Shown piece by piece: positions 10,071 through 60,659 of a stretch of 64,000 nucleotides of DNA (its first letter is position 1; each line of letters begins with the position of its first letter). Origin of the DNA: Octopus sinensis. Lineage: Eukaryota. A model generated the notes under the pieces. That model did no database searches. It was given only the letters and a program-made list of their open reading frames with translations, and was not told the origin of the DNA. Where the stretch lies: NCBI RefSeq assembly GCF_006345805.1, contig NC_042999.1, forward strand, positions 46,190,001 through 46,254,000. The letters are read 5' to 3'. Made by a program: the position numbers and the translations under genes.

Positions 10071-11716
10071 TTGGGTCATCCCATAAATAATGCGGTTTTT
10101 TAATACTTCTTTTATTTTTCAAAATTATGATAAACAAAGTTTTTTTTAATCTAAAATATACTCTCCTTCGTTTTCTACAATGCTCTTCCATCTATCTTGT
10201 TTTGAGAGGCGGTTGGATGGAACCTACACTCGCCTCCTTATGAGAGCTCAAAATCTCTCGTGGAAGCCTCATCCAACCAAAATGCAAATATATGGGAAAC
10301 TACCACCTGTGTCATCTCTTGTGAAAGGTAGGAGAGTCCAGTTTGCTGGACATTGTTGTAGAGCTGAAAACGAGGCAATTTCTACTCTTCTCCTCTGGAA
10401 GCCATCTACTTGCAATACCAGAGGGCGCACACTCTCCTACCCTGATGTAATCTCCAGGGATACAGGCATCCAGCAACAGGACCTCCGTAATGCTATGATG
10501 GACTGTGAAGTCTGGCGTAGCATGGTAAATTCCATTGTCTCAACCACGGTCGAACAATGATGATGATGATCTATCTTGTAGACTTGCAAGGCTCCTCTTC
10601 CAAAATTCACTTGTTCGTGACGGGAAATACTCCTCCAGTACTGTTCAGACCTTGTCTATATTATCCAATTTTCCCCCCGTCCAAATGAGTTTGAAGACTG
10701 CGGAATAAAGGATAATCAGATGGGACAATGTCTAGTGAATAAGGTGGGTGGGGCACCGTTTCCCATTCACATTGCTCCAGCCTTTGGAATATCATCCTCT
10801 TTGAATGTGGCCGAGCATTATTCTAATGGAAGAACAGCTTTCGTCTTAAAACCAAATATTTTCTTCTAACGCTGATTTAAGCCGCTTAAGCTGTTTGCAG
10901 TAGATCTCCTTATCGTTTGGTTTGAGCTTAAAAGTTCAAAGTGGACTAAACCTTTCTTATCCCACCAAACAGATGACAAAACCTTACGTAGGTGAATACT
11001 TTCTTTAGCCTGGGGTGCCGGTGTTTCTCCTTTCTCTACTCACTGTCTTCGGCGCTTGACATTTTTATGGAGAACCCATTTCTCGTTACCAAAAAAGGGC
11101 CAAAAAAGGTTCATTTTTGAGACGTGATACCAAAGAAGAGTACACATTCACCCTCTGCGCATGATTAGACTCGGAAAATTTGTAAGGAAGCCATTGACCC
11201 AATTTGCTGACTTTTCCGATGACACGCAGGTGTCGACGAATGGTTAGATGACCAAATCTAAGCTTCTCTGCTAGTTCCTCAACAGTTACGATAGGATTTT
11301 GTTTCACCAAGATTTGCAGTACGTCGTCGTCGAACTCTATAGATCTTTCAAGACGAGGCATGTCTTCTGGGCTGTTGTCTCCGGTTCACAATTTCTGGAA
11401 CTGCCGTTGACACTGGCTTACGCTTATTGTCTGATCCCCATATACTACATTACTATTCCTCGCACTTTCCGTTGCGTTGCTGCCTTTATTGAACTCATAA
11501 AGCAAAATATGCCGAATATAGTCCTTTGTTACCTCCATTATAGCTCTGAAAAAATAAATGTTAAAAGCGAACTGCACTCTTCAAAACTTGCACTGAGAAT
11601 AAATGTAAAGTAAAATTACTACCTGTTTTTATAGCAAGTTGATGCAGGTAGTTTATACTGCCCCCTCTGACTTTTAGTTTATACAATTGAAAAAACCGGA
11701 ATATTTATAGGATGAC

Positions 11717-17572: not shown

Positions 17573-17582
17573 CCTGTGTAAA

Positions 17583-17975
17583 GGCGGCGAGCTGGCAGAA
17601 ACGTTAGCACGCCGGGCGAAATGCTTAGCGGTATTTCGTCTGCCGTTACGTTGTGAGTTCGAATTCCGCCGAGGTCGACTTTGCCTTTCATCCTTTCGGG
17701 GTCGATAAATTAAGTACCAGTTACGCACTGGGGTCGATGTAATCGACTTAATACCTATGTCTGTCCTTGTTTGTCCCCTCTATGTTTAGCCCGTTGTGGG
17801 TAATAAAGAAATAGGTATTTCGTCTGCCGTTACGTTCTGAGTTCGAATTCCGCCGACGTCGACTTTGCCTTTCATCCTTTCGGGGTCGACAAATTAAGTA
17901 CCAGTTACGCACTGGGGTCGATGTAATCGACTTATTACCTATGTCTGTCCTTGTTTGTCCCCTCTGTGTTTAGCC
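17583..17975 (+). mobile_element. SINE-A head-to-tail dimer
   Basis: Same junction as at 7.76 kb; 10-bp TSD cctgtgtaaa at 17573-17582 and 17976-17985. Confidence 0.9.
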
Positions 17976-20888: not shown

Positions 20889-21127
20889 AAGGCGGCGAGC
20901 TGGCAGAAACGTTAGCGCGCCGGGCGAAATGCTTAGCGGTATTTCGTCTGCGTTACGTTGTGAGTTCAAATTCCGCCGAGGTCGACTTTGCCTTTCATCC
21001 TTTCGGGGTCGATAAATTAAGTACCAGTTACGCACTGGGGTCGATGTAATCGACTTAATACCTATGTCTGTCCTTGTTTGTCCCCTCTGTATTTAGCCCC
21101 TTGTGAGTAATAAAGAAATAGGTATTT
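20889..21127 (+). mobile_element. SINE-A, full length
   Basis: Head, body and tail, ending aaagaaataggtattt. Confidence 0.9.
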
Positions 21128-26271: not shown

Positions 26272-27192
26272 AATACGTACCATCAGATTCGAACGTGAAC
26301 ATGTTCATCGTTTTTGTATTTCGTCATTGAAGAACATCTACTTTCAGGCAAATGTGTGTTCTTAACACACTTCATTGAAGTGTACTTTGGGACATTCAGT
26401 GTTTCGACATCATTGTGTCTCCTCAGCCAAAGCTTCCATCCCCGGACTAATGAATCTAACAAGAGGTCATGGCTCTTCTTTATAAATTCTGAAAGCAAAT
26501 TATTTGCTGTTGCATGTTAAGATACAGACAGGCATCTCGTGAAGGGTATACGTTGTGATCTCGGTCATTTATACTTCAGGGAAACCGGGTAACTGGCCCT
26601 GTGAGCCCTGGGACTGGAGACTAATGTCCATGTCTTTGCTGATATCAGGCAATCAAAAGTACATATTTTATACTTATGTACTGTAAAATATTTCATTAAG
26701 ATGTTTGAGGTACTTTAATTTAATACTTTTCAATTCTGAAATTACGTCATCTAAGAGAACTAGATTATTTGTTCGCCCGTTATACTTTAGTTAGTTAGAG
26801 AGGTGGAGTAAAGGTAAGAGAGAGAGAGAGAGAGAGAGAGAGTGTGTGTGTGTGTGAGTGAGTGAGTGAGTGTGTGTGGGGAGAAATGTAAGAAGAGAAG
26901 AAAGAAGAGAGGAGTATAATAATACACTAAGGCCAAATGCATCAAGTGGTTAGTTGAAGGGAGAGGCGAAGAACGAGAGAGAAAGACAGTGAGAGAAAAG
27001 TGGGAAAGAGAAGCGTTAATGACGCGGTGTAGAGTGGGGAGGGAATGGTAAAGAGAAATAGAGAAATGTTAAAGTCATGAAGATGGGATTAACATGGTTA
27101 AAATGTTTGTTGAAGAGGTAAAGAGAAAGAGAGAAAGATAAGATGCTTAGCAGAGGGAAATTTTAATATTTTGACTGGAAGTGTAATGACTT

Positions 27193-27708
27193 CATCATCA
27201 TCATTGTTCGACTGTGGTCGAGACAGTGGAATTTACCATGCCACGCCAGACTTCACGGTCCATCATGGCATTACGGAGGTCCTGTTGCTGGATGCCTGTA
27301 TCCCTGGAGATTACATCAGGATAGGAGAGTGTGCGCCCTCTGGTATTGCGAGAAGATTGCTTCCAGAGGAGAAGAGTAGAAATTACTTCTTTTTCAGCTC
27401 TACAACAATGTCCAGCAAACTGGACTCTCCTACCTTTCACAAGAGGTGACACAGGTGGTAGTTTCCCATATATTTGCATTTTGGTTGGATGGCGCTTCCA
27501 CGAGAGATTTTGAGCTCTCATAAGGAGACGAGTGTAGGTTCCATCCAACCGCCTCTCAAGCTTCTTTGATAACGTCCAGGTTTCTGAGCCATATAGCAGA
27601 ATTGGTTCGACTGTGGCTTTGAAGATTTCAAGTTTGAAGTCTCTACTTAGATTTGATGACCAGATCTTATGCATGTCATTACAGGCTGACCAGGCCATAC
27701 CCTTTCTA
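27193..27708 (-). mobile_element. 5'-truncated RTE-like LINE, same family
   Basis: 165-aa ORF with EPILLYGSETW and FAGHC motifs; (TGA)n tail; TSD aatgactt at 27185-27192 and 27709-27716. Confidence 0.9.
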
Positions 27709-39277: not shown

Positions 39278-39620
39278 GTGAAGATAATAAATAGTGTAGA
39301 AATGTAAGATTCTAGATTAAAATTCTTTATAGTGTTTACCTTCATCCTTTTACGCTGTGAATTAAAACCTTATGTAACTTGGCGTCACTTTTTATCCTTT
39401 TTGAAAGAAGGGAGTAAGTTCTAATAAGATATTAGTGTTGATATTTTCACCATCACTTCTCGTATAAAAAAAATAAGGGCTAAATGACTAATGCATACAA
39501 AAGTAAAAAGCAAAAACAAAATAATGAAAAGGGAAAACTATACCCAGTTTAGTAGTATAACTAGTAGAAAGGTTTTAGTTATTTGTATTTATTTAAATAA
39601 CTTCTGTTTCTTTTATACAG

Positions 39621-41594
39621 GGATCGTTGAAAAATATGAACATTGTGCGAGGAGGCCGGATCAGAGAAATTCTATGAGAAATGGTATAGAACCGGCACCT
39701 AATAATAGACCCCCGCACAATCTTACAAAGAATAAATCTCGAGAAAGTTTAACGAGTAGAAAGTCATCATCTTCGCTAAAAAGCATTGGAAGCGATTCTA
39801 TGCAAAACAAAACTAAAACGAAGACAAAAGGACGGACATCGCCGAGTGTAAAGAGCACGAAAATAAACGACAAACATGTCAGGTGTTCTATATCTCCATC
39901 GTCTTCATGGTATTATGATCCACTAAATGCTGTATGTAACATTCCATCGATAAAACCAGTCCGAAGTTCATCTACTGGAGCGTTAGTCAGTATTAATGAC
40001 AAATTCCAAGCAAAACGAAGTGCAAGCTGTAATAATAATCCACTTGCGAAACGAAATTCTCTTAAAAAGCACAACAGTTCCTTGGATCAGAATCTAAACC
40101 ATTCGATTTCGAACTGTAGTTCAGTTGGCTCGCCTGAAACCGGAAGCAAGTTATCCACGTCGAACTGTGTAAAAATCCGGAAATGTCGTACGCGTTCTCC
40201 TAGTATAAGAAGTGTTAATGATGATCTAATTGGTTCTTCGCCTAAAGAAAACACCAATGAAATGTCTTGCTCTGACACTTCAACCAAAACACTCACCTCA
40301 GAAATGGTGAAGGGTATTCATAAGCAACATCCGTCTACCCAAAGCTCTCCGTCCAGTAAAAGCAGTAAACAAAATATTTCGCCAAAATCAGAAGCGACTC
40401 AAGCCAAAAGGCAGTCTAATGAGCCAAAGGAATATTCGCAAACTGAAAGTCTTGAAGAGATGTTGAAAAATTCTTCAAATTTATCAGCTACAAAAGAGAA
40501 GAGTAAAACGAATCCTAAAATGTATGCTTCTGCATTTTCTTCATCGTCCACTTCATCTTCATCATCCTCTCTGAAGGCCCCAATAGCTGCCGCCGCTGCA
40601 GTTGCGCTTGGTCCACAAGGGGATTGCGAGACGCTGGCTTTTCGAAAGACAAGCAATAGGTCTTCTAGTAAAATTAATCGAAAATCTTGGCCGTTTTACC
40701 AAAATCAGTTGCTTGATGTTTGTCAAGGAGCGCCTGGTGTCCCCAAGCTGAAATCTAGCCCCCTTTCTACTGACCGTTTAACCAGAATTGAAAAGAAGAA
40801 GCAACGCAGTCAATCATTTGATAAGGACGGTGTTGTCAGTTTGACGACACCTTATATTAACACTCCTGCTAACGCTCAACCAAGGGTATCTAATTATTCT
40901 ATCACCTCCTCTGGTTCATTCGTTTCAGCTAGCAGCTACTCTACAGAATCTTATGAGTCTTTATTTACATCAGAAGAATGCAACGAAGCAACGGAAGAAA
41001 CCAGTATGAAACATTGCTCTTCTCACACCGAGTCATCACTTACTCTTCAATATGTCAGTGCAGAAGGTGCATCTGTCGGTGGTAGTACGTCAGCAGAGTC
41101 CTTTGCAACGGTCAATGAGTCGGCCACAGAACACGTTTCCGTCAACGGTAGCACATCAGCTGATTCTTTTGCAACCGTAGATGGTTCTTCTGCAGATTCC
41201 TCTCAGGGCATGCGCAGATTTCCACCTCCACTTCAAGAACAGCCAGCGCCACCAGGTCCGACGTTATTGTTAACAACTTCAACCTCCACCGATTCATCTC
41301 AGTCATCGTTGTCACCTTCTCTCTCTCCTCGTTTTCGATCTTTGCAGGCGTCACCTTTTGTGCCAACTGCTTCACCCATTTCACCCTCTTCATCAACATC
41401 ACTAACACCAAATGCCTCAAACGATCCAAACGTACAATCAGTACATGCATCACCTGCAAAAACTTGTACATCTTCTTCGACACAATGTTCACCGTCAGAC
41501 CTTCCAAACACCGAATTCTTGCCTTCAAATATGTTAGGAACTCTCATCGGTTTCGATGCACTCTCTATAAACTCTATGAACAGATATTCCAAAG
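39621..41594 (+). CDS. PLEKHM1: Large internal exon, ~658-aa Ser/Thr/Pro/Lys-rich, probably disordered linker
   Basis: Lies inside the 726-aa ORF 39491-41671; acceptor ttcttttatacag, donor AAG|gtatgt; 1974 nt, phase 1 to 1, no stops. Confidence 0.85.
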
Positions 41595-43218
41595 GTATGT
41601 TTTCTTCTTTTCTTTACTTCTTTTGCTTTCTTTTGAAATATTTGCATGAAAGAAACCATAAATATATTTAATAAGCATACATAAACCAAATACGTATGTA
41701 CTTACGTAAATATTGAAACTTAAAATAAATTGTGCTTTGAGTAAACATTTTTACTTTGGCCGAGAGGAACGAAATTGAGGCGTTGGTTAAACTATATGCT
41801 TTTCTGTGTATGATCATGAAAAAGGATTTCATTTATTACTGGTTTCCATATTTTTTTTTGCTGGTTCATCAGAGATCATTTGCTCATTTTATTGACCCTC
41901 TCTGTCCCGGGAAAATTGCAGTAAGTAGCTATTTATTGCATACACAAACTCACATAGAATGAAAGTTCTCTGTCGTACGCACATTCCACATTTTTCTCCT
42001 TTTAACGCTAAAATAAGATGTCAGTATTTCGTATTTAAAAATGTAAAAAAAAAAAATAAATAAAAAAGATCCATATTTTTAAAAAATTGAGACATAGGCC
42101 ATTCTTGGAACTACCTATTAGAAATTTAGGGTCGATTCACAGGAGTAGACAGGATGTTTGAATTTCGCAGATTTGATCGCAAGCAATTTTATCACACAAG
42201 TGGTGAGATGTTTAATTTGTGTTAGGGTGAGATTTTGTCAGTGTTAAACAAATAATTGAACGTATTTTTCCCTCTCTCTCGGTATTTCGGTGATTCATTG
42301 TTGAATTTGTCAAGCATTTTTGTGCCCCAAAGACATCGGGACAAAGTAACAGATCTCTTCCCCCTTCCGACAAATATGAGCTTACTTTAACTCACGAATA
42401 TCTGTCTGTTTGTCTTCTCTGCACTATATTGATCGCCCACTCAGTTTTCTTCTTTTTTTCCACGTTGATTTAAAAAAATTTTTTTTTTATGTCGATTATA
42501 TTTTTCTGTCTTGTTTTTCTGATCCTGTTAAAAACTGGGTCGATGAGTTGATAGGTTGTGAAAATCTACCAGTAGAAAATCTACCGGGCTCATAAGGCAG
42601 CGATTATGTATGACAGTTATTGTTATTCATCATCGGAACACCTTAACTCTTTTGACAATGTGTTGTCAGATATACACGATGTATGCGATCAGATATTCAT
42701 GCTCGAATCCACCAGGATATATAAAGAATGTATGTATTATTGTTTGGAATATCACACCATTAAAAAATTATCTGTTTCGCAGAGATCATTACGCGTTTGC
42801 CGATTTTTATAAACAGTAGCTCGTACTTGTATGAGATTCATCGTTCGGGCGCAGTAGCTTTGATTCAGGAGGCACACAATGAGGTCAAAATGGCACGGCA
42901 CTTCAAAGTCCTCTAAGGTAATTTATCTGCATGCTTTAAGGACACACATCGTTTGATAAGAGTCGAGTGCTCTTCAATGACGAAACAAGAAGATCCATCA
43001 AATATTCATGATTGAATATGCCAGACAGAAGTATTAAGCACTTTCTATTACATAAAGATTTACTGAAAGATGTATTGAGAAATATAAGTTTATCTATCTG
43101 TCTCTCTGTCTGACAGTCTGTCAGCTTGCCTGCATCTGTCTGTCTGTATGTATACTTTATTTAAAGCAGCAGAAAATTCAACAAAACCTGTTACTCTGAG
43201 TTTCACGTTGTCTGTATG

Positions 43219-47044: not shown

Positions 47045-47141
47045 CTCGCTGGAGAATGCCCATTTCTGTTCAATTGTAATGTGAGAAGGACTGTGAAACT
47101 CACCTTATCCAGTACATGCCCAACATGCCATAGATCGTTAA
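47045..47141 (+). CDS. PLEKHM1: Coding exon, start of RH domain (LAGECPFLFNCNVRRTVKLTLSSTCPTCHRSL)
   Basis: Acceptor attttattttcag, donor TAA|gtaagt; 97 nt, phase 0 to 1; first CxxC of the RH domain. Confidence 0.8.
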
Positions 47142-48194: not shown

Positions 48195-48492
48195 TACTTT
48201 AGACTGGCCGAGGTACCTTCGTGTCGGAAATGACTTGAGTACTTGGCAGTAACAAGGTTCAGAACAGCGGAATGCGGATAAGTCACTCTCGTGGTCGCTT
48301 TCGAGATGATTTCGTTTCCTCTTGCTCTGAAGTATATTGTGTTTTTAACACACTGCGTCTATAACGCTATATTCCCCCAAACGACCACTTCAGCCTCTGA
48401 CTTTACCACGATATACACACGGAAAGTATATCAGTATATCATATCAAAACTTAATCTATACCATTTCCCATTCAATATCAGAATAATTCCTT

Positions 48493-48712
48493 AAGGCGGC
48501 GAACTGATAGAAAAGTTAGCACAACGGGCAAAATGTTTAGCAGTATTTCGTCTGTCTTTAAGCTCTGAGTTCAAATTCCGCCGAGGTCTACTTTGCCTTT
48601 CATCCTTTCGGGGTCGATAAATAAAGTACCATTTGCATACTGCGGTCGATCTAATCGACTGCTCCCCTCCCCCCAAAATTTCGGGTCTTGTGCCTAGAGT
48701 AGAAAAGAATAT
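48493..48712 (+). mobile_element. SINE-A, left boundary of the tandem duplication
   Basis: Match to family. Confidence 0.85.
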
Positions 48713-49664
48713 CAAAATAATTCCATTCAGTTTGGAATAATTCCATTCATATTACATACTATATAGTATATAATATGCTTTTGGGCATAAATAATAAATA
48801 AACTTAGTGAATAAATTGATTATGAATGGAACGATATAACGCAAAAATCAGTTTATTATTAGTTGTACATAAATGATTAAATCAAAAACACTGTAATTTT
48901 TATTCTCATTTTGAATGGAATCATTCTTGTTTTGGATGGAATTATTCCATTTTGAAAGGAACTATTCCATTTTGAATGAGCTATTCTATTTCGAATGGAA
49001 TTATTCCATATTGAATCAAATTATTCTCATATTGAATGTGGAATGCTATTAGCTTATTGCATAATATATATATATAAATATATATATATAGGATAAGAGG
49101 AGTTTTCGTTTCGAATGCTCAAAAAGGTGTACCACTAAAATTCAAATTTGAACAGCAGTTAAATTTGTGGTAAGTGGCTGGCTTGTTCAAAGTGGCTGGA
49201 AGTAGCTTCCCCTTGAATCAGTAGGTATAGGTTAAAGTAGTGAGGAAAGGCAAACAATTAAGCAAGACATTTAATTTAATTCAATTTAGCTACATAACGA
49301 ATAGTAATTTGTTATTGCATAATTTGGCTTTTATTCAACTTAGCGGCCGCTTTGGTTTTATCATTCGTTGCAATTTTTTTTTTTTTACCATTTTTTACTA
49401 TTCGAAGTAATAAGTAAGCATGAGGTTTGTTGAGCGTCTAATCTAATTTCTTTTCCTGGACGGCACTACTTTCTTTCTTTGACGTCGTTAATGTCCTTGT
49501 AAAAAACAGAAAAGCCTTACGCATAATTTCCTTCACCTGCTCATAATTCTGGGACTTTGAGTATAAAGAAGAAATTAGTCAACTAACTAATCATTTGTTT
49601 AATTAATTATTAAATCGTTTATAAGTGTATAAGCATTGGGACTCTTTAAATTGAATAGTTGCAG

Positions 49665-49793
49665 ATTTTAATCCCCGAATGCCGCGCAAGTGTAGTTACG
49701 ATGGACTGTACTACTGTGATAAACACCATGTGGACGACATTTTCTATATTCCGGCTGAAATGGTTTTTAACTGGAAGTTTGAGATGTTTAAAG
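49665..49793 (+). CDS. PLEKHM1: Coding exon, RH domain (FNPRMPRKCSYDGLYYCDKHHVDDIFYIPAEMVFNWKFEMFK), copy 1
   Basis: Acceptor gttgcag, donor AAG|gtaaga; 129 nt, symmetric phase 1 to 1; C...GLYYC..H...IPA....NW signature of the PLEKHM1/DEF8/Rubicon RH domain. Confidence 0.85.
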
Positions 49794-49867
49794 GTAAGAA
49801 TGAACTCATTATACTGACTGATTTTCTTTATCATCATCATCATCATCATTATTATTATTATTATCAC

Positions 49868-50088
49868 CAAAGTAATGAACCTGCAGAATCATTCGTGTAC
49901 TGGGCAAAATACTTAGCGGCATTTCGTCCGACTTTACGTTCTGAATTCAAATGCTGCCGAGGTCGACGTTGCCTTTCATCTTTTCGGGGTCGATAAAATA
50001 AGTACCATTTGCATACTGCGGTCGATCTAATCGACTGCTCCCCTCCCCCCAAAATTTCGGGTCTTGTGCCTAGAGTAGAAAAGAATAT
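49868..50088 (+). mobile_element. Chimeric SINE-A at the duplication junction
   Basis: The 5' half equals the 51245 copy and the 3' half equals the 48493 copy. Confidence 0.85.
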
Positions 50089-51040
50089 CAAAATAATTCC
50101 ATTCAGTTTGGAATAATTCCATTCATATTACATACTATATAGTATATAATATGCTTTTGGGCATAAATAATAAATAAACTTAGTGAATAAATTGATTATG
50201 AATGGAACGATATAACGCAAAAATCAGTTTATTATTAGTTGTACATAAATGATTAAATCAAAAACACTGTAATTTTTATTCTCATTTTGAATGGAATCAT
50301 TCTTGTTTTGGATGGAATTATTCCATTTTGAAAGGAACTATTCCATTTTGAATGAGCTATTCTATTTTGAATGGAATTATTCCATATTGAATCAAATTAT
50401 TCTCATATTGAATGTGGAATGCTATTAGCTTATTGCATAATATATATATATAAATATATATATATATAGGATAAGAGGAGTTTTCGTTTCGAATGCTCAA
50501 AAAGGTGTACCACTAAAATTCAAATTTGAACAGCAGTTAAATTTGTGGTAAGTGGCTGGCTTGTTCAAAGTGGCTGGAAGTAGCTTCCCCTTGAATCAGT
50601 AGGTATAGGTTAAAGTAGTGAGGAAAGGCAAACAATTAAGCAAGACATTTAATTTAATTCAATTTAGCTACATAACGAATAGTAATTTGTTATTGCATAA
50701 TTTGGCTTTTATTCAACTTAGCGGCCGCTTTGGTTTTATCATTCGTTGCAATTTTTTTTTTTTTACCATTTTTTACTATTCGAAGTAATAAGTAAGCATG
50801 AGGTTTGTTGAGCGTCTAATCTAATTTCTTTTCCTGGACGGCACTACTTTCTTTCTTTGACGTCGTTAATGTCCTTGTAAAAAACAGAAAAGCCTTACGC
50901 ATAATTTCCTTCACCTGCTCATAATTCTGGGACTTTGAGTATAAAAAGAAATTAGTCAACTAACTAATCAGTGTTTAATTAATTATTAAATCGTTTATAA
51001 GTGTATAAGCATTGGGACTCTTTAAATTGAATAGTTGCAG

Positions 51041-51168
51041 ATTTTAATCCCCGAATGCCGCGCAAGTGTAGTTACGATGGACTGTACTACTGTGATAAAC
51101 ACCATGTGGACGACATTTTCTATATTCCGGCTGAAATGGTTTTTAACTGGAAGTTTGAGATGTTAAAG
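51041..51168 (+). pseudogene. Duplicate of RH exon 49665-49793, 1 nt shorter (ATGTTTAAAG to ATGTTAAAG)
   Basis: Otherwise identical, with intact splice sites; 128 nt, so inclusion shifts the frame into a TAA early in exon 58463. Confidence 0.75.
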
Positions 51169-51244
51169 GTAAGAATGAACTCATTATACTGACTGATTTT
51201 CTTTATCATCATCATCATCATCATCATTATATTATTATTATCAC

Positions 51245-51450
51245 CAAAGTAATGAACCTGCAGAATCATTCGCGTACTGGGCAAAATACTTAGCGGCATT
51301 TCGTCCGACTTTACGTTCTGAATTCAAATGCTGCCGAGGTCGACGTTGCCTTTCATCTTTTCGGGGTCGATAAAATAAGTACCAGTTCAATAGTAGGGCC
51401 GATGTAATCGACTTACTTCATCTCCCAAAACTTGTGTGCCAAAATTTGAA
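51245..51450 (+). mobile_element. SINE-A, right boundary of the tandem duplication
   Basis: Match to family. Confidence 0.8.
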
Positions 51451-51495
51451 ACCATTATTATTATTATTATTATTAATTATTATTATTATTATTAT

Positions 51496-56005: not shown

Positions 56006-56624
56006 GTAGTAGTAGTAGTAGTAGTAGTAGTATTTATTCGAAAAAGAAGGGAGGTGGATTAGCGGATTCGAGGAAGCAACGCGTAAAATGCTCTGCATAT
56101 CCGATTTTCATTCTTATAAATCCAATGGAATAGGGTCCAGTAGATTACTGTGACGAACAAATTGACTTAAAATTCCCTCCAAATATGTTGCCTAGTGCAC
56201 AGATATTGTTAATTCGAAAGAATTTTTAAGACTATGGGCTCGATGCAATACAGCTTGAAGGTACCTAGGCTGATAACTATAGAATTTTCCTACTGGGAAC
56301 ATCATTTCAGAAGATTCCATTCTAGGCAATCCTGAGTAAGTTTTTAGAGTGGGATTTACGGAATGAAACAAAGTAATGACGATAAGAGGAAGAGAGACAG
56401 ATGTAGTCGATTTTTGGGTGGAGTAGTTCAAAGTTTGCTTCTGAGAGGTACAGAGGTAACTATCGTAAAAGCAGAAGAAGAGTGAAGAAGCAACAGCGTC
56501 TGTGGCCTATATGTTTCTTGTGGATATACCATAAAAATTGCTTCGTGTGCAATAGCAACACTATCTTACCATAGTAAACGGTTTATTTATAAATTTCTCT
56601 CACAGGTTTGATACCCATCCTTAT

Positions 56625-56880
56625 CATCTCTTGTGAAAAGTAGGAGAGTCCAGTTTGCTGGACATTGTTGTAGAGCTGAAAAAGAGGTAATTTCTACTCT
56701 TCTCCTTTGGAAGCCATCTACTCGCAATACCAGAGGGCGCACACTCTCCTACCCTGATGTAATCTCCAGGGATACAGGCATCCAGCAACAGGACCTCCGT
56801 AATGCCATGATGGACCGTGAAGTCTGGCGTAGCATGGCAAATTCCATTGTCTCGACCACGGTCGAACAATGATGATGATG
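56625..56880 (+). mobile_element. 5'-truncated RTE-like LINE, same family
   Basis: Near-identical to the other two copies; TSD atccttat at 56617-56624 and 56881-56888. Confidence 0.9.
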
Positions 56881-57884
56881 ATCCTTATATTAGTCCCCTC
56901 AAAATACAGCAGTTTCTGAGCTTCTTTTATATAAGTACGAAAGCCCAGTCAGATCACCTGAAAGTCTAGCTTTCTGTATCTGAAATGGAAGATGTTTCAA
57001 CCCGGAGTAATAATTTCTCTCACTTTACACAGTGTAATTACAACCCATGGATGAGTATTACTCCAATTTTAAGAACGGAGCCGCATCTAAATTCACAAAC
57101 ATTCTCAACTGTATCCAAGAAAAAAAAATCAAAGTCAAAAGGAGGCTACAATTACTTATCCATCGATATGCTGTATCATCCCTTTGTCTCTTATTGATAC
57201 AGTAACGTTTCCTGATCAGAGTTTTCTCACTTATTTAGTTGTACTGTTCTCTTCGTACCCCGACCTAAGCCGGATGCTGATAACCCTTTTTGTTTCGGTA
57301 AATCTTAGCTAATTATTTAAGGAAACATCGCCCTTAATAATCGCTATTTCTCATTTTTATTCTCCAAATTTATATTTTACAGCTCATAACAATCTCACAT
57401 TTTCATTATCTACATCAAACTTCAAAAATCTCTCTCAAAATATACCCTACTCGATCAGGGGCTAAACAACAATAGAATTAATTGTTTCTAACTTAAGCAC
57501 AAAGCTCGAAATTTGAGGGTAGGAGATTAGTCGATAAATTTAGACAGTGATAATTTTAGACTATTTTGTCGACCCCAGAGGTGTAAAAGGTAAAATTGAT
57601 CTCGGCAGGATATTAACTTGGAATGGTGTAACAAAATAGAGCAAGCCCAATGCGTTAATGATCCTTCCAACGTACCACGCTAACAACAACGACATCAACA
57701 GCAAAAACATCAACATTAAATGTTAACATCTCAGAGTTTATCCCTTTGATCATAGTCTGCTCAAAATGAACCGGCCTTGTGCTAAAAAATAGCATAAACT
57801 ACTTACAATTTATTTTTCTGATTATAGATCTTATTGATTTAGGTAGGCCCAAAATTAAGCAATGAACAACAGCAACAACAGCGT

Positions 57885-58462: not shown

Positions 58463-58575
58463 TTTCACGCCAAAATTACGATTTTCTAAGGTCGTGGTTT
58501 GACCAACCAGTTATTGACCTGAGTGCACTATGTGCACGTCTACATTACTATGTCACACCTTTGAATAACGTCCGG
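58463..58575 (+). CDS. PLEKHM1: Coding exon, RH domain (VSRQNYDFLRSWFDQPVIDLSALCARLHYYVTPLNNVR)
   Basis: Acceptor atttattttcag, donor CGG|gtaaat; 113 nt, phase 1 to 0; aligns without gaps to the remembered RH segment ICRQ..FL....QP+I.L...A.L...V. Confidence 0.85.
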
Positions 58576-60559: not shown

Positions 60560-60659
60560 NNNNNNNNNNNNNNNNNNNNNNNNNNNNNNNNNNNNNNNNN
60601 NNNNNNNNNNNNNNNNNNNNNNNNNNNNNNNNNNNNNNNNNNNNNNNNNNNNNNNNNNN
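60560..60659. other. Assembly gap (100 N)
   Basis: Run of N. Confidence 1.

Follow-up and report, generated by a model that had tools for sequence, protein, structure and literature searches.

In this study, a tandemly repeated coding exon of a Rubicon-homology (RH) gene was analysed in a 64,000-nucleotide (nt) stretch of the Octopus sinensis genome (contig NC_042999.1, positions 46,190,001 to 46,254,000, forward strand), hereafter called the window, in which coordinates are counted from the first letter. The repeat is probably a real and evolutionarily recent germline tandem duplication that arose between two short interspersed elements (SINEs) and whose transcript would by default be frameshifted and probably loss-of-function. 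The order left SINE (L), unit, hybrid SINE (M), unit, right SINE (R) and the hybrid nature of M can be read directly from the sequence. The features involved are the following:

48493-48710, + strand, left SINE (L), an old copy, delimited by repeat search and three-way alignment
48624-49999, + strand, duplication unit 1: 3' part of SINE L, intron, exon copy 1, intron, 5' part of the hybrid SINE
49665-49793, + strand, exon copy 1 (B1), 129 nt, phase 1-1, in frame, encoding FNPRMPRKCSYDGLYYCDKHHVDDIFYIPAEMVFNWKFEMFK
49869-50086, + strand, hybrid SINE (M), 5' part of R type and 3' part of L type
50000-50007, + strand, interval of the crossover or template switch, AAGTACCA, the same 8 nt in L, M and R
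50000-51376, + strand, duplication unit 2, 1377 bp, delimited by direct repeats and alignments
51041-51168, + strand, exon copy 2 (B2), 128 nt, frame shifted (TT replaces TTT), splice sites intact
51246-51453, + strand, right SINE (R), with an (ATT)n tract behind it

Two tandem units joined by a hybrid SINE

The two units lie head to tail on the + strand, measure 1376 bp (48624-49999) and 1377 bp (50000-51376), and each consists of an intron-exon-intron segment. Unit length is identical to the distance between consecutive SINEs (1376 from L to M and 1377 from M to R), and the repeat finder likewise returned families of direct repeats whose starts lie 1376 and 1377 nt apart. When the two halves were locally aligned, 27 of 1429 columns differed; 16 of these 27 fell within the first 100 nt, where the left and middle SINEs are of different types. 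Beyond the crossover point, the units are distinguished by only 8 events, namely 3 substitutions, 2 changes of microsatellite length and 3 small indels. The substitutions are all transitions, and two occurred at CpG sites. Variants specific to unit 2 were located at 50946, 50971 and 51225. Exon copy 1 carries TTT at 49787-49789 where copy 2 has TT at 51163-51164; apart from this site, all homopolymers, including a run of 13 T, agree between the unit copies. When the window was compared with itself, the duplication appeared as a pair of 1515 columns with 97.7% identity and was the sole long near-identical repeat, the next-best ones being SINE-sized. It is therefore not part of a window-wide pattern.

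All three SINE copies are oriented on the + strand and start at 48493 (L), 49869 (M) and 51246 (R). L and R share the same orientation, 82% identity over 135 nt and no exact match longer than 16 nt. A clear mosaic structure was observed for M in the three-way alignment. Up to position 49999, it is identical to R at 33/33 informative SINE sites, with one private change (CpG to TpG at 49896), whereas from 50008 on it is identical to L at every informative site, a 7-nt indel included. A single switch thus accounts for 51/52 informative sites of the hybrid SINE. This switch took place within AAGTACCA (50000-50007), between the last R-type site (49999) and the first L-type site (50008), in register and with no bases inserted or lost. 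Chance similarity as the origin of the hybrid was rejected, as 51/52 sites fit one switch. A first-pass annotation, made from the sequence of the window, had already proposed two near-identical units of about 1376 bp bounded by SINEs, with a mosaic junction element passing from right to left type at 50000-50007. Both units were recovered at these places with their 8 difference events, and the three-way alignment agreed exactly with the proposed switch, a single in-register one within a chimeric SINE.

The flanks of the SINEs are in line with this organization. L displayed a candidate target-site duplication with 13/14 matching positions (ATCAGAATAATTCC, 48477-48490, and ATCAAAATAATTCC, 48711-48724). 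None was found for M, whose upstream flank is that of R and whose downstream flank is that of L. The flanks of R are composed of microsatellite sequence and are uninformative in this respect. Junction k-mers of 16 to 31 nt are unique within the window.

The repeat was considered a SINE on the basis of its copy number (about 23-25 copies in 64 kb, or about one per 2.7 kb), its occurrence in both orientations, its consensus length of about 235 bp and the presence of a GAGTTCAAATTCCGCC motif resembling a tRNA B box. Neither Rfam nor ARAGORN assigned it to a tRNA or SINE family, and a literal paper search with fragments of the consensus returned no match. Many copies of the family abut (ATT)n tracts, and the youngest pair in the window (17581-17820 and 20889-21127) is 97% identical. 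In addition, each unit carries an AT-rich inverted repeat made of GAATGGAATTATTCC-like short repeats (48708-48754/48993-49033, with copies at 50084-50130/50363-50409), whose arms of 41-47 nt are 83-85% complementary and about 240 nt apart. SINE L was apparently inserted into this inverted repeat.

Origin and age of the duplication

The most straightforward scenario starts from two old SINEs of the same orientation, about 82% identical, that would have flanked a single exon. Unequal homologous exchange, or a template switch during replication, would then have fused the 5' portion of R with the 3' portion of L within the 8-nt block and yielded the arrangement L, unit, hybrid SINE, unit, R. With its roughly 23-25 copies per 64 kb, the SINE family offers ample substrate for such recombination. 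The unequal crossover between flanking SINEs put forward in the first-pass annotation is supported, as a structural interpretation, by the chimeric junction.

Likewise, the annotation's view of a very young event is in agreement with the state of the hybrid element. M has retained 51/52 of its parental informative sites, whereas L and R differ at 18% of their sites, so that the duplication is far younger than the SINE insertions. The 3 substitutions in 1376 bp amount to 0.22%. At an assumed neutral rate of 1-5e-9 per site per year, this would correspond to an age of roughly 0.2-1 million years, to be taken as an upper bound since an exchange between different haplotypes would have imported existing polymorphisms.

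The three non-microsatellite indels are confined to 220 bp that include part of the exon and the sequence immediately upstream of it (49568-49787 against 50946-51163), a clustering of marginal significance (scan P about 0.05-0.07). An improbable reading sees in them the scar of error-prone replicative repair, namely microhomology-mediated break-induced replication (MMBIR), in which case the frameshift would have been made in the duplication event itself. Such repair would fit the indel cluster, which was nevertheless left unexplained since the clustering is marginal and no polarity can be assigned without an outgroup.

The duplicated exon and its predicted transcripts

The duplicated exon encodes the peptide KCSYDGLYYCDKHH...IPAEMVFNW, which comprises the second half of Zn cluster 1 of the RH domain and the conserved IPA..NW segment. 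Its two neighbouring exons are:

47045-47141, + strand, upstream exon A, 97 nt, ending in phase 1, with splice sites ttttcag/CTC and TAA/gtaagt
58463-58575, + strand, downstream exon C, 113 nt, encoding the RH stalk VSRQNYDFLRSWFDQPVIDL..., placed by profile and homologue alignment and by isoform translation

The spliced peptide of 113 residues matched the Pfam family RH_dom (PF13901) at positions 1-73 of 206 with an E value of 9.6e-15 and 55.4 bits, the gathering score of this family being 28.1. It also matched the Rubicon structure 6WCW (E 4.9e-05), the aligned residues being those of Zn cluster 1 and of the beginning of the helical stalk. Exon A contributes ...TCPTCHRSL with the first CxxC of Zn cluster 1; its counterpart in Rubicon 6WCW is RCAGCG, and the homologues have their CxxC at the aligned place. 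Together with the alignment of homologues, these matches bear out the Rubicon-homology assignment of the first-pass annotation. The exon could be aligned with 8 homologues without any gap, and 129 nt is therefore its ancestral length.

Both exon copies possess the same 3' splice site (tttaaattgaatagttgcag/ATTTTA, 20 nt identical) and the same 5' splice site (AAG/gtaagaat), and they are separated by an intron of 1247 nt. With identical splice signals and such a separation, both copies are expected to be spliced in, and their joint inclusion is the expected default outcome. When exons are duplicated within human disease genes, both copies are usually recognized.

Four isoforms were translated. 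Isoform A-B1-C keeps an open frame, and isoform A-C is also in frame while deprived of half of Zn cluster 1. In contrast, isoforms A-B2-C and A-B1-B2-C both run into a TAA at 58487-58489, 25 nt into exon C and 86 nt before its end. If both copies are included, the frameshift coming from copy 2 would thus lead to a message that is predicted to be truncated within the RH domain and is likely degraded. Only transcripts skipping copy 2 would encode the normal protein. The haplotype is, most likely, a loss-of-function or reduced-function allele. Here again, the first-pass annotation was reproduced in its description of a 129-nt, phase 1-1 copy 1, of intact splice sites in both units and of a copy 2 lacking one T and shifted into a TAA of the exon starting at 58463.

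Alternative readings

Several points weigh against a recent inactivating duplication. Its existence and zygosity rest on the assembled sequence, and the assembly was scaffolded, with at least one gap (60560-60659). The differences between units (about 0.2% substitutions plus indels) would also fit two alleles, and 5 out of 8 are indels, a high share for real mutations. The loss of a single T may stem from an error of the consensus, as reads map ambiguously in this region. Finally, the splicing outcome and nonsense-mediated decay (NMD) are predictions, and the rules of NMD dependent on the exon junction complex are not established for this lineage. Three alternatives were weighed.

According to the first one, the repeat would be a false heterotype duplication, i.e. 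two haplotypes of a single-copy segment that were joined via their SINEs during assembly or gap closing. The differences between units (3 substitutions and 5 indels in 1376 bp) are of allele-like size, the window derives from a scaffolded assembly with a 100-N gap, and false duplications are common in unphased assemblies, where they can duplicate exons (PMC9516828). The locus further resembles such cases by its adjacent near-identical copies with allele-like differences, a configuration from which spurious extra exons can arise. Yet, the hallmarks of false duplications include a gap, or a gap in read depth, between the copies (PMC9516828), while the Octopus copies are joined seamlessly: no N occurs from 48.4 to 51.5 kb, the only gap of the window being at 60560-60659. 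Moreover, they form an in-register recombinant repeat with a unique junction sequence. Neither a k-mer graph nor, in all likelihood, a long-read overlap could have bridged the chimeric SINE, with its 8-nt switch next to a 16-nt identity, unless junction reads existed: exact matches between L and R do not exceed 16 nt, and the two are 82% identical over 135 nt. The size of the switch block and the shortness of the exact matches therefore argue for a junction that was present in reads, not for a merging of L and R in a k-mer graph. The window crosses many microsatellites and SINEs without a gap, which suggests reads longer than the 2.9-kb structure. Substitutions also display a biological spectrum (all transitions, two at CpG), unlike random error, and no other near-identical duplication occurs in the window, the reason for which a systematic duplication artefact across it was rejected. 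An assembly artefact, although the main rival, appears unlikely in view of these features. That the duplication exists in the sequenced animal, on at least one haplotype, is considered quite probable.

The second alternative accepts the duplication and attributes the missing T to a consensus or polishing error. Both exons would then be intact, and inclusion of the two together would add 43 residues in frame inside Zn cluster 1 instead of truncating the protein. The TTT/TT difference concerns a single base in a short T run, and indels are over-represented among the differences between units. Short-read polishing is weak where reads map equally well to two copies, and this established weakness was counted in favour of an erroneous T loss. 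Against this, the sequence context is identical in both copies over more than 100 nt on each side, where a systematic error should strike both of them, and the run of 13 T agrees between the copies, as do all other homopolymers. The accompanying substitutions, again transitions with two at CpG, follow a biological spectrum. An intact second copy thus seems rather doubtful, and we hold with good confidence that the T loss is real, provided that the duplication is.

A third possibility is that the frameshifted copy already functions as a regulated element, either as a poison exon tuning expression through NMD or as one member of a pair of alternative exons. Symmetric tandem-duplicated exons are a known raw material for alternative exons, and the Octopus exon is both symmetric and arranged in tandem. 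Inclusion of copy 2 is further predicted to introduce a premature stop (TAA, 58487-58489) located 86 nt upstream of the next junction, as would be expected from a poison exon. Identical splice sites and near-identical flanks, however, leave no visible basis for differential regulation. The copies differ in length (129 versus 128 nt) and only one of them keeps the frame. A 1247-nt intron imposes no steric exclusion, and with an event as young as this one, conservation cannot be invoked in favour of a function. A role of this kind is highly improbable. With long intron, identical splice sites and no copy-specific selector, no mechanism of exclusivity could be recognized, RNA pairing not having been modelled, and the mutually exclusive or alternative exon suggested in the first-pass annotation was not retained for the same reasons. 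Nothing suggests that copy 2 is regulated or retained as a poison exon, and a nascent poison or alternative exon is less likely than a young inactivating variant. A related view, that the duplication is fixed or common and that copy 2 is a newborn poison exon whose frequency of inclusion sets the level of a Rubicon-family autophagy/endolysosome regulator through alternative splicing coupled to NMD, is very unlikely as well. If true, it would represent this mode of regulation caught at birth and created by one-step SINE/SINE recombination.

The recent inactivating duplication is therefore preferred over these alternatives; in all probability it is a polymorphism and did not evolve as a device for regulation.

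Comparison with known systems

The closest counterparts are found among human Alu/Alu-mediated rearrangements (AAMR), which are characterized by a chimeric, near-complete element and by junction microhomologies that are mostly shorter than 25 bp, and which cause intragenic exon deletions and duplications, for example in LDLR (PMC6071635). In a similar way, two direct and diverged SINEs flank the Octopus exon, a near full-length chimeric SINE occupies the junction, the breakpoint falls in a short microhomology (8 nt), and the copy number of a coding exon has changed on the kilobase scale, with a frameshift as the consequence. Judged by its sequence-level features, all of which are those of this class, the duplication can be regarded as a member of the SINE/SINE-mediated intragenic duplications. 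Several differences were also apparent. The Octopus SINE is about 235 bp long with a tRNA-like B-box motif, whereas Alu is derived from 7SL. The case comes from a reference assembly, not from a patient; it is a duplication, whereas catalogued AAMR are mostly deletions; and its second copy has undergone an additional 1-nt deletion. For AAMR, the mechanisms put forward comprise classical non-allelic homologous recombination, MMBIR-type template switching and microhomology-mediated repair, as single Alus are shorter and more diverged than what classical non-allelic homologous recombination prefers (PMC6071635). The same mechanistic uncertainty would apply to the Octopus duplication, given its 82% identity and its 8-nt switch block.

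The relationship to regulated exons is more distant. Like the exons from which mutually exclusive pairs originate, the duplicated exon is symmetric (phase 1-1), stands in tandem within an intron and has kept both pairs of splice sites. Unlike established pairs, its copies are near-identical and show no diverged function. As in poison exons, inclusion of the extra exon is predicted to give a premature stop well upstream of the last junction. Known poison exons are, in contrast, regulated and usually conserved, while the Octopus copy is a very young by-product whose splice sites equal those of the constitutive copy in strength.

Repeat-mediated exon duplication as such is already well known, whether the present case is real or an artefact. 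If real, it provides a clean non-mammalian example with a chimeric junction resolved at the base level, and it shows that the instability known from human Alu pairs also operates in a genome in which one SINE family recurs about every 2.7 kb. It would also predict that a Rubicon-family regulator of late-endosome and autophagosome traffic exists naturally as a null or hypomorphic allele, which could be genotyped and followed in the population. In an automatic gene model of the locus, the exon may appear in duplicate or with a frameshift, or the model may be labelled a pseudogene. If the duplication is an artefact, it usefully points to a local error of the assembly.

Gene assignment and genomic context

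In human Rubicon, the N-terminal part of the RH domain is Zn cluster 1, a Cys4 FYVE-like module distal to Rab7, while Rab7 is contacted by Zn clusters 2-4 together with the C-terminal helix; the zinc ligands are nine Cys and one His (PMC7382272). The spliced exons match RH_dom positions 1-73 only, and the Rab7-contacting clusters 2-4 lie beyond the window. Zinc ligands CxxC, C and C are present within the window. The next conserved Cys, fourth ligand of Zn cluster 1, is replaced by His (YYCDKHH, as opposed to YYCxxCH in 8/8 homologues). This change occurs in both exon copies (49724-49726 and 51100-51102) and could reflect a lineage-specific Cys3His site or point to a divergent paralogue.

An exhaustive HMMER search with the exon (44 residues) retrieved 68 proteins, none with more than 59% identity and none from a close relative; the two top matches were translated satellites. 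The best full-length relatives combine RUN and RH domains and display 37-44% identity. They include a protein of Haliotis asinina annotated as PLEKHM1-like, others coming from Nucella, Helobdella and Trichuris. Because of these identity levels, the gene was filed as encoding a putative RUN/RH-type (Rubicon / PLEKHM1-like) endolysosomal protein and the choice of paralogue was left undecided. The best matches, to proteins of Nucella, Haliotis and Helobdella, suggest together with the repeat content a cephalopod or molluscan origin of the DNA. A word-indexed protein search with the 113-residue spliced peptide returned no match, and an exact look-up of the 105-residue open reading frame (ORF) running from the first Met codon of the exon to the next stop returned no matching contig. 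Neither a close orthologue nor a second copy of the locus was found in protein and ORF searches.

When full-length RUN+RH relatives were compared with the six frames of the window by tblastn and profile, only exons A (weakly), B1, B2 and C were matched; no RUN exon and no downstream RH exon appeared in the window. One large frame further upstream deserves mention:

39488-41668, + strand, Ser/Thr-rich open frame, 727 codons, weakly matching the linker region of RUN+RH relatives

From its strand, order and composition, this frame is probably a large exon of the same gene coding for a disordered linker. Neither this frame nor the other large ORFs of the window had a Pfam match. Downstream, the stretch of exactly 100 N at 60560-60659 is a scaffolding gap of unknown size, located 9 kb beyond the duplication. 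It falls inside the intron following exon C or beyond it, and downstream RH exons may lie in or past this gap.

A library protein, P0002 (122 residues), carries the DEF8-like RH exon motif RICDYSGNYYCExCHWNDPMLIPARVLHNWDF in three tandem copies, which represents either a homologous exon repeated in tandem in another organism or an assembly loop. Another interspersed repeat of the window was recorded in three copies with 95-96% identity (10202-10569; 27192-27559, - strand; 56624-56883). It contains an open frame (…VQFAGHCCRAE…LSYPDVISRDTG…) that has no Pfam match and resembles the 3' end of a retrotransposon ORF.

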